DNA of 63,133 bases, counting the filler, from Octopus bimaculoides (lineage: Eukaryota), in the NCBI RefSeq assembly GCF_001194135.2. It is 7 parts of 6 records of this genome, joined end to end, with 100 filler letters (N's around TTAATTAATTAA, not from the genome) between each part and the next. Parts side by side here need not be neighbours in the genome. Positions count along the whole stretch, not along the records: positions 51,261 to 58,705 come from NC_068985.1; 6 more parts are not named here. One strand, given 5' to 3'. Shown in pieces: positions 51,263 to 52,168 of this stretch. Numbering within the stretch: the first letter of the stretch is position 1; the number at the start of each line of letters is the position of its first letter. The position numbers and the translations under genes were made by a program. Under the pieces are notes generated by a model. The model was not told where the DNA came from. It ran no database searches and worked only from the letters and a program-made list of their open reading frames with translations.

Positions 51263-52168
51263 GAGCTGTTACCTTTGATAGACTCTCATGAGTTGTTGCA
51301 GGCTAAAGTTGAGGAAGTTGTGATCGTGTTGCAGGCACACAAGGCTATGAAGGATGCTACCACTGACCTCAAGACTATTCATGGACATGAACCTCTTACC
51401 TCCAGTAGGATAGGAACAATTCCACCACCAGAACAGAAACAAATGATTGGTGAGACTCTCTTTCCATTGATTCATAATATGTATCCAGATAAGGCTGACA
51501 AGATCACTGGTATGTTGCTGGAGCTTGACAAGGCTGAGCTGTTACCTTTGATGGACTCTTGTGAGTTGTTGCAGGCTAAAGTTGAGGAAGTTGTGATTGT
51601 GTTGCAGGCACACAAGGCTATTAAGGATGCTACCACTGACCTCAAGACTATTCATGGACAAGGACCTCTTACCTCCAGTAGGAAAGGAACAATTCCACCA
51701 CCAGAACAGAAACAAATGATTGGTGAGACTCTCTTTCCATTGATTCATAATATGTATCCAGATAAGGCTGGCAAGATCACTGGTATGTTGCTGGAGCTTG
51801 ACACTTCTGAACTTTTACATATGATAAAGTTTCATGAGTCATTGCTGGCTAAAGTTGAGGAAGCTCTAACTGTATTGCAGGCACACGAGGCTAAGGAAGC
51901 TGCTACCACTGACATCAAGACTATTCATGGACAAGAACCTCTTACCTCCAGTAGGATAGGAACAATTCCACCACCAGAACAGAAACAAATGATTGGTGAG
52001 ACTCTCTTTCCATTGATTCAAAATATGTATCCAAATAAGGCTGGCAAGATCACTGGTATGTTGCTGGAGCTTGACAAGGCTGAGCTGTTACCTTTGATGG
52101 ACTCTTGTGAGTTGTTGCAGGCTAAAGTTGAGGAAGCTATGGTTGCATTGCAGGAAAATTGGGATTAG
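51263..52168 (+). CDS. Tandem MLLE (PABC) domain ORF, 5'-incomplete: 273-bp/91-aa repeats with 3 complete MLLE domains (~51389-51613, 51662-51886, 51935-52165) plus the last helix of a fourth
   Basis: The frame is open from the gap edge to TAG 52166-52168. Each unit reads [45 protein letters not shown]....ELL.AKVEE...VLQAH, which aligns with the PABPC1 C-terminus (QGQEPLTASML..APPQEQKQMLGERLFPLIQ...[21 protein letters not shown]....LRSKVDEAVAVLQAH). The 273-bp period is measured from GAGCTGTTACC at 51263 and 51536. Confidence 0.9.

Follow-up and report, generated by a model that had tools for sequence, protein, structure and literature searches.

Octopus genomes carry an intronless gene for tandem MLLE domains, probably descended from a retroposed poly(A)-binding-protein transcript

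Positions 51,263 to 52,168 of a 63,133-nucleotide stretch of Octopus bimaculoides DNA (assembly GCF_001194135.2; 'the window' hereafter denotes the whole stretch) lie in a part drawn from NC_068985.1 and encode a chain of repeated MLLE domains, the peptide-binding module found at the C-terminus of PABPC, the poly(A)-binding protein of the cytoplasm. As judged from its sequence, this piece is the 3' end, namely the last 3.3 units, of an intronless gene of the Octopus lineage, and the locus is real. We hold the anatomy and the origin of this gene, which probably lies in a PABPC transcript, with high confidence. That its product would serve as a sponge or scaffold for proteins carrying PAM2 motifs is a more tentative proposal, to which we give a little less than an even chance; the statement as a whole, comprising a PABPC-derived retrogene without RNA recognition motifs (RRMs), with multiple MLLE domains and with that function, is one towards which we lean slightly.

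One open reading frame (ORF) of 301 codons runs along the plus strand from 51263 to 52165, where a TAG closes it, and the other five frames contain 6–37 stops across 51263-52168. At the GC content of this sequence (36%), 301 open codons would not be expected by chance. Tandem Repeats Finder (TRF) resolved 51262-52154 into 3.3 copies of a 273-bp period, with 90% matches and 0% indels. A search of the ORF with the Pfam MLLE profile PF00658, as proposed in a preliminary description of this piece, scored 255.9 bits against a cut-off of 27 (E=1.6e-77) in three full stretches, and the best sequence matches among solved structures were the human PABPC1 MLLE entries 1g9l, 1jgn and 3ktp. The description's intronless, frameshift-free ORF of 273-bp MLLE repeats is thereby borne out. 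So, by translation, is its statement that all three complete units carry KITGMLLE and the QKQMxGExLF helix; it had missed that unit 1 has an Asp in place of the otherwise conserved Gly just before KITGMLLE. Pairwise, the units share 88–94% of their nucleotides (6–12% differ) and 75–86% of their amino acids. Unit 2 comes nearest to a canonical PABPC MLLE, being 71% identical to an insect PABP and 78% identical to the canonical consensus over the core. Upstream of unit 1 the frame leaves the piece mid-unit, in agreement with the earlier count of at least four units, and 33 of the 36 residues of this partial unit agree with the tail of the unit that follows. The 5' edge at 51263 marks the limit of the supplied piece; the genome assembly need not have a gap there.

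The nearest database proteins were the three isoforms of O. sinensis LOC115212275, an O. vulgaris model named 'polyadenylate-binding 4-like' and a 191-aa UniParc entry. In O. vulgaris, the corresponding locus (OX597818.1, ~130.4 Mb; L001, L006) is colinear with window positions 51262-52895, and synteny resumes at 53441-53612 and 54011-54534, which establishes the two loci as orthologous. Three adjacent intronless genes reside there, each reading through as one unbroken frame: gene A (417 aa, 4 MLLE domains), gene B (690 aa, 7 domains) and gene C (1145 codons, 12 domains; L006 18029-21466). Pfam recovered 4 and 7 MLLE stretches in genes A and B, respectively, whose flanks are 99.9% identical. 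The same three arrays recur in O. sinensis (L002 10001-24400, CM016863.1) with 4, 7 and ~13 units, the third being truncated at its 3' end. Orthologous arrays in other cephalopods, which the preliminary description had recommended searching for, were thus found in both species. The multi-MLLE genes of octopus form a genuine gene family specific to the lineage, and RefSeq already lists it, as an uncharacterised protein.

Unit by unit, the window gene pairs with gene A: HES...AHEAK marks the penultimate unit and VEEAM the last in both species, and the partial unit matches unit 1 of the four-unit orthologue by position. On the strength of this correspondence, the window gene is most likely a four-unit gene, with its first 0.7 unit and its N-terminus beyond the edge of the piece. 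Its last unit stops 10 codons short of the O. vulgaris orthologue. The window TAG is a nonsense change at a codon that reads CAA in O. vulgaris, whose own TAA, 10 codons on, is still found in the window at 52199-52201; the 10 residues dropped are located after helix 5.

The N-terminus, which the description could not give, is now supplied by the orthologues. All full-length copies begin with MAFSPFTTREMNKMQSENTRFNFKFGPIRPF...QQAVVIIHENN, homologous to the PABPC linker directly before the MLLE; after this linker part of ~70 residues, tandem MLLE domains are all that follows. In-frame stops lie 9 codons 5' of the ATG in the orthologues, and tBLASTn searches with RRM-containing PABPs found no RRM homology in the ~10 kb upstream in either O. 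vulgaris or O. sinensis. The full-length orthologues (the window being without a 5' end) hence lack the four N-terminal RRMs of a PABPC, and where a PABPC has a single, multi-exon C-terminal MLLE, they have 4–12 units in one frame.

The preliminary description had named as its own refutation a PABPC 3' exon mis-expanded by assembly, and the collapse or expansion of a repeat would be an artefact of the same kind. The O. bimaculoides assembly is indeed gap-rich, with runs of N at 55055-55172, 56379-56781 and 57557-57656. However, O. vulgaris and O. sinensis have, in chromosome-level assemblies, the array together with its flank and the substitutions specific to its units, the units differ from one another to the extent given above, the upstream sequence has no RRM exons and a frame with stops, and the canonical PABPC intron is missing here. 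Given three independent assemblies and the unit-specific substitutions, we rejected an assembly artefact, whose probability we regard as vanishingly small.

Some further observations concern the individual copies. Gene C starts with GTG, not with ATG as the other copies do, and its next Met is codon 11; its units 5–8 repeat units 1–4, and some of its units read KIIGMLLE or EITDMLLE. The RefSeq isoforms X1–X3 of O. sinensis seem to span frameshifts by means of 'introns', and the entire O. sinensis cluster sits inside a plus-strand gene model with a Fuz_longin_1 domain. The 191-aa UniParc protein (P0007, UPI000695869E) consists of an N-terminus, MQSQNSRAIFKFGPMRPLRP..., and 1.7 units; it overlaps the first 99 residues of the window protein with few differences (PPQEQNKRIG in P0007) and, by this comparison, may represent a second copy (paralogue), an allele, or a protein of a sister or other species. 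Exact look-ups of the window products (P0002, P0257), of P0001 and of P0007 matched no contigs.

With respect to origin, the absence of introns, the truncation within the linker, a decayed stretch of linker upstream of the start codon and an A-rich tract downstream of the stop suggest that the array was probably founded by a 5'-truncated processed copy of a PABPC mRNA and then amplified. The description had offered an amplified PABP retro-fragment as one of its alternatives, and the first three of these features sustain it. PABPC genes of abalone (Haliotis, L003), hard clam (Mercenaria, L004) and whale shark (Rhincodon, L005), which served for the intron comparison in place of an Octopus parent, share an intron inside the MLLE, between SL(K/R)xK and V(D/E)EAV; since it is common to all three, this intron is probably ancestral to bilaterians. 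They also have a second intron in the linker shortly before the MLLE. Both regions are contiguous in the octopus genes, the former in every unit and the latter in the N-terminal part. The 273-bp unit spans the last ~90 residues of a PABP, from 'IQGQEPL' to 2 residues before the parental stop, and has the tail AATTxIK. Upstream of the ATG, in the same frame, lies a decayed, stop-interrupted PABPC linker (FYSSLLIQFMALGPHCWTTVRPT vs FFHPTQIPQMRAGPRWQTTVRPT of the PABP P0091, with GPHCWTTVRPT as the counterpart of GPRWQTTVRPT), implying that the original insert started within the linker. The A-rich tract (62% A), 35–125 nt past the stop, may be what is left of a poly(A) tail; later duplications have probably erased any target-site duplications. 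On the negative side, the Octopus parental PABPC was not found: a search with P0091, the best linker match, gave no named Octopus PABP. For this reason it is still formally conceivable that the parent lost its intron and was then duplicated at the DNA level instead of by retroposition. One candidate for a cephalopod PABP, P0054 with its AATTQIK tail, was discarded, as it is actually a beetle PABP.

Given all 301 residues and 35 aligned multi-MLLE proteins, AlphaFold2 returned three helical bundles with a predicted local distance difference test (pLDDT) score above 90, in addition to the partial bundle at the edge of the piece, and assigned low confidence to the linkers at residues 130-133 and 221-223; the predicted template modelling score (pTM) was 0.39. 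The window protein is accordingly predicted to resemble beads on a string, with canonical five-helix MLLE bundles joined by flexible linkers. Foldseek matched the bundles to complexes of the PABPC1 MLLE with PAM2 peptides (3kus, 3ktr, 3kut, 2x04, 7bn3) at target-normalised template modelling (TM) scores of 0.90–0.95 and root-mean-square deviations of 0.7–1.5 Å (about 1 Å) from the PABPC1 MLLE crystal structures. Among these matches, 7bn3 shows the N protein of coronavirus 229E bound to the PABPC1 MLLE.

We mapped the PAM2 contacts known from eRF3–MLLE structures (PMC2854688) onto the octopus units, scoring Q560, G563, E564, F567, G579, K580, T582, M584–I588, K606, E609, A610, V613, L614 and H617 in human numbering. 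Over 28 distinct units, T582, M584, L585, L586, K606, E609 and L614 were invariant, and F567 was present in 27. A610V occurs in most units and H617Q/N in a subset; gene C also shows T582I and G583D. Within the window, the contacts of unit 2 are all canonical except for the array-wide I588L, unit 1 combines G579D with A610V, and the last unit (unit 3) combines V613A with H617N. Since the fold and most contacts are kept and the frame is maintained, a PAM2 scaffold or decoy function is plausible.

The sequences of the units are fluid. Over the coding array, the window and O. vulgaris are 85.3% identical without an indel, a divergence of 14.7% that exceeds the 8.1% of the non-coding flank. Nei–Gojobori estimates of synonymous (dS=0.217) and non-synonymous (dN=0.150) divergence both lie above the flank value (K = 0.086). 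Positive selection as the sole cause of the high coding divergence was rejected, as dS is raised too (0.22 vs 0.086 for the flank K); from the sequence comparison, we attribute the rise in both measures to gene conversion and the turnover of units. States particular to one species have spread over the units, with DPQEQKQVLGE in O. vulgaris and a different state in the window. An L-to-I change (QKQMIGE) is now found in all window units, a spread that non-orthologous units or gene conversion fit better than positive selection does. Gene C contains a four-unit higher-order repeat. Between O. vulgaris and O. sinensis, array B differs by 3.2% and array A by 0.5%.

Against this background of turnover, the reading frame stands out. 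When each distinct variant was counted once over 27 units, drawn from the window and from O. vulgaris genes A, B and C, none of the 170 variants was a stop, as compared to 7.2 expected (P=6e-4), and the ~7.6 kb of array contained no indel vs four in 725 bp of flank. Synonymous variants numbered 32 (18.8%) vs a neutral expectation of 25.5%. As far as these counts can tell, the reading frame is protected and the amino-acid sequence is not, a combination compatible with a functional protein that diversifies quickly, and also with a young array in which decay has yet to show.

The second of these possibilities deserves weight. On this view the locus is a young retro-pseudogene array without function, its unit number rising and falling as in a minisatellite, and its frames are open only because most units were copied recently from an intact one; a good part of the evidence weighs on its side and against a working PAM2 scaffold. 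For the window and O. vulgaris, omega is 0.69 (bootstrap 95% confidence interval 0.47–1.03), and dN/dS ranged from ~0.7 to 1.5 across analyses. The low synonymous fraction speaks for weak constraint on the amino acids. Restricting the count to the 60 codons that never vary among canonical MLLEs, from human to insect and mollusc-type domains, left the ratio unchanged, and dN/dS is about 1 even there; octopus units keep 33–47 of these 60 residues, i.e. have lost 13–27. A PAM2 scaffold function is made less likely by purifying selection that is weak or absent at the amino-acid level, and the excess of coding over flank divergence speaks for a non-functional array. Contacts themselves have changed in places: Q560K in first units, G563S/E564K in three distinct gene B units (the SK variant appearing again in gene C and in O. 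sinensis), G579D/R/S in some units, K580E in five, and the T582I of gene C. The human PABPC1 triple mutant F567A/K580A/L585A no longer binds PAM2 (PMC11347130), by analogy with which the K580E units may be weakened in PAM2 binding. Unit number is very unstable, with near-identical units and higher-order repeats, and since many units are very young duplicates, the frame's openness carries less weight than its length would imply. Several frameshifts of 1–2 nt interrupt the O. sinensis arrays, one of them in an A-run, vs none in O. vulgaris; they may be errors of a long-read assembly or real, and the third O. sinensis array is the one that lacks its 3' end. No sign of expression emerged either, in that no Logan or transcriptome-derived protein of the family was seen, and literature searches (MLLE with octopus, tandem MLLE, LOC115212275, PABC with retrogene) returned no paper on the locus.

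Other parts of the record count against decay alone. Stops are missing where about seven were expected, and indels are missing from an array ten times the length of a flank that has four of them. The start-codon region and the four-unit architecture are kept between species that are ~8% diverged, and the hydrophobic core has been retained along with most PAM2 contacts. In addition, there are fewer synonymous changes than neutrality predicts, a deficit that suits diversifying selection better than decay. We consider a non-functional array the main rival, less likely than the sponge or scaffold but commanding a substantial minority of our belief.

The array probably came about as follows. A 5'-truncated processed copy of a PABPC mRNA inserted, its 273-bp segment (the last 91 codons) was amplified head to tail, and segmental duplication of the whole gene then gave rise to tandem paralogues, now of 4, 7 and 12 units, whose units turn over through duplication and gene conversion. 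Selection would keep the frame open and let the surface change at the neutral rate or faster. Without an RRM, the protein would not bind poly(A) and would instead offer 4–12 putative PAM2-docking sites, capturing PAM2-motif proteins (homologues of PAIP1/2, eRF3, ataxin-2, TOB, PAN3, GW182 and LARP4) off the poly(A) tail. It would thus act as a multivalent sponge or scaffold that competes with PABPC and modulates deadenylation, translation or granule assembly. Its activity may be confined to a tissue such as the germline; restricted-tissue activity is common among young retrogenes. Behind this scheme stand the predicted fold, the domain number, a protein without RRMs, a frame kept open and contacts that are mostly intact; from there it would extend to expression, PAM2 binding and an effect in the cell.

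An alternative version of a functional protein is that MLLE specificity has shifted from the canonical PAM2 partners towards new ligands, for instance in the role of a decoy for proteins of viruses or transposons that dock on the PABP MLLE, with an arms race driving copy number and surface. A preserved frame with dN/dS at or above 1 would accord with it, as would the rapid changes in copy number (4/7/12 units), the contact substitutions in some units (G563S/E564K, K580E, G579D, T582I, H617Q) and the presence of a viral protein on the PABPC1 MLLE among the structural matches (7bn3, 229E N). Accessory MLLEs of the fungal protein Rrm4, whose pockets are divergent, do not bind PAM2 (PMC9249222). 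All of this is circumstantial, however, most contacts are still canonical, and the synonymous sites have diverged too, favouring unit turnover and gene conversion over selection; we regard the shift in specificity as improbable. The same low standing applies to its more specific form, a decoy system variable in copy number that would soak up hijackers of the PABP MLLE (viral or retrotransposon PAM2-like proteins) or endogenous repressors (PAIP2 or GW182, for example), with diversifying selection on its surface and unit number. Were it true, an animal would for the first time be seen to have made an amplified molecular decoy out of a translation-factor domain.

Features of the window gene and the reference introns are collected in the table below. 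Downstream of the array, window positions 55370-55896 contain a decayed fragment of a Mos1/mariner transposase (HTH_48, E=3.3e-8), followed by broken ORFs. An ORF on the minus strand (56302-57063) ends in ...RLRWYGHVVRMDEDSCVKKC..., is cut by the N gap at 56379-56781 and has no Pfam match; it resembles what we take to be the C-terminal tail of a non-long-terminal-repeat (non-LTR) retrotransposon ORF2. A dispersed repeat at 56146-56341 is also present three times in the O. vulgaris locus. A (TA)21 run (55013-55054) adjoins the N gap at 55055-55172, and with the further gap at 57557-57656 the sequence has the look of a gap-rich draft assembly.

Table 1. Coordinates of the octopus MLLE array and its 3' flank in the window, and of the MLLE introns in reference PABPC genes.
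Feature	Position	Strand	Basis or remark
Partial MLLE unit, C-terminal 36 codons (helices 4-5 and tail)	51263..51370	+	Translation; colinear with O. vulgaris gene A
Unit 1, complete, 273 bp, 91 codons, linker and MLLE; Gly579 (human numbering) to Asp, A610 to Val	51371..51643	+	Pfam MLLE; AlphaFold pLDDT >90 over bundle; residue mapping
Unit 2, complete, 273 bp	51644..51916	+	Sequence comparison, residue mapping
Last unit, 83 codons, MLLE with V613A and H617N	51917..52165	+	Translation, alignment to O. vulgaris
TAG stop	52166..52168	+	Three-way alignment
Conserved 3' flank or untranslated region (UTR)	52169..52895	+	91.9% identity to O. vulgaris, 4 indel events
A-rich tract, 62% A	52200-52290	+	Composition
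(ATT)n microsatellite, (ATT)22, kept in O. vulgaris	52366-52431		Within 3' flank
MLLE intron positions	L003 11302/11722; L004 6616/7158; L005 25508/26025		PABPC genes of abalone, clam, whale shark

The interaction of MLLE with PAM2 is a hub that links deadenylases, the release factor, microRNA (miRNA) effectors, ataxin-2 and PAIPs to the poly(A) tail, and the octopus lineage is noted for unusual RNA biology. An RRM-less protein with 4–12 MLLE domains would, if functional, be a built-in dominant-negative or a scaffold for the PAM2 network, and paralogues of 4, 7 and 12 units side by side would amount to a natural experiment on valency. The locus would also show cleanly how a new gene can be born through retroposition and the subsequent amplification of a domain within it; if unexpressed, it would merely be a curious, minisatellite-like retro-pseudogene.

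Relative to the MLLE of PABPC1, the octopus units are 57–71% identical to canonical domains and share KITGMLLE, the predicted five-helix bundle and most contacts. Their descent, linker and C-terminal tail included, is clearly from a PABPC gene. Unlike PABPC1, the octopus protein has no RRMs, and no poly(A) binding is expected of it; it has 4–12 MLLEs as opposed to one, and its gene is intronless. Its sequence is changing at a roughly neutral pace, in contrast to the canonical domain, in which little changes (from human to molluscs, 60 of 91 positions are invariant). UBR5/EDD offers a second point of reference, as its MLLE has the same fold and binds PAM2 in a non-PABP protein; it is, however, a single domain in a HECT ligase of 2,800 residues and only 47–52% identical to the octopus units over the structurally aligned core. 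A stand-alone gene for a PABP C-terminal MLLE without RRMs is known from Arabidopsis, namely MPC (MATERNALLY EXPRESSED PAB C-TERMINAL), which, belonging to a plant, has only one domain, is imprinted and expressed in the endosperm, and has an origin unrelated to that of the octopus gene.

In the literature, MLLE domains of metazoans are single-copy, as the preliminary description had stated, and our searches turned up no paper on animal multi-MLLE proteins, with the fungal Rrm4 as the only relevant system. In the databases the statement does not hold, as there are dozens of predicted animal proteins with 2–6 MLLEs. An exhaustive profile search gave 25 cluster representatives at E<=1e-30, many with 2–6 MLLE stretches, from Plakobranchus, Haliotis, Ostrea, Anneissia, Apostichopus and the coral Desmophyllum among others, and some of them, like the octopus protein, have no RRMs. 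These undescribed proteins (P0016, P0053, P0021, P0325, P0326, P0328, P0336) may in some cases be annotation chimeras. Four divergent MLLEs characterise a family in Desmophyllum and in many transcriptome or metagenome proteins; other architectures join RING with 2 MLLEs, PHAX_RNA-bd with 4, F-box with 4, or MIF4G and RRMs with 3, and one 1573-aa protein contains 6. Orthology with the octopus genes was rejected on unit identities, as the units of these proteins are closer to each other or to the canonical MLLE than to octopus units. Together with the case of Haliotis, where the 3' exons are tandemly duplicated with their introns and do not form an intronless array, this points to independent events, and the other animal proteins are apparently separate amplifications or old families, as far as sequence comparison goes. 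In Haliotis cracherodii (L003, JAJLRC010000001.1), RRM exons of PABPC occur three times and MLLE exons twice, with a period of ~3.3 kb, and the duplication yields an annotated 2-MLLE protein with halves that are 98% identical. The octopus family is distinct from all of these in being intronless, RRM-less, of up to 12 units and fast-evolving.

A close parallel is Rrm4 of Ustilago maydis, in which three C-terminal MLLEs form a flexible binding platform (PMC9249222). Both proteins carry several MLLEs on one chain with flexible linkers, and individual domains may differ in ligand. They differ in that Rrm4 has three N-terminal RRMs and the octopus protein none, and in age: the MLLEs of Rrm4 are ancient, with 17–32% identity to characterised MLLEs, whereas the octopus units are young and 75–100% identical to one another. 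Their origins are independent, and Rrm4 binds PAM2-like motifs of Upa1 in endosomal mRNA transport. The Rrm4 combination of RRMs with three divergent MLLEs is thus not what the octopus protein presents; in it, a known domain is set in an undescribed architecture and has followed an undescribed evolutionary mode.

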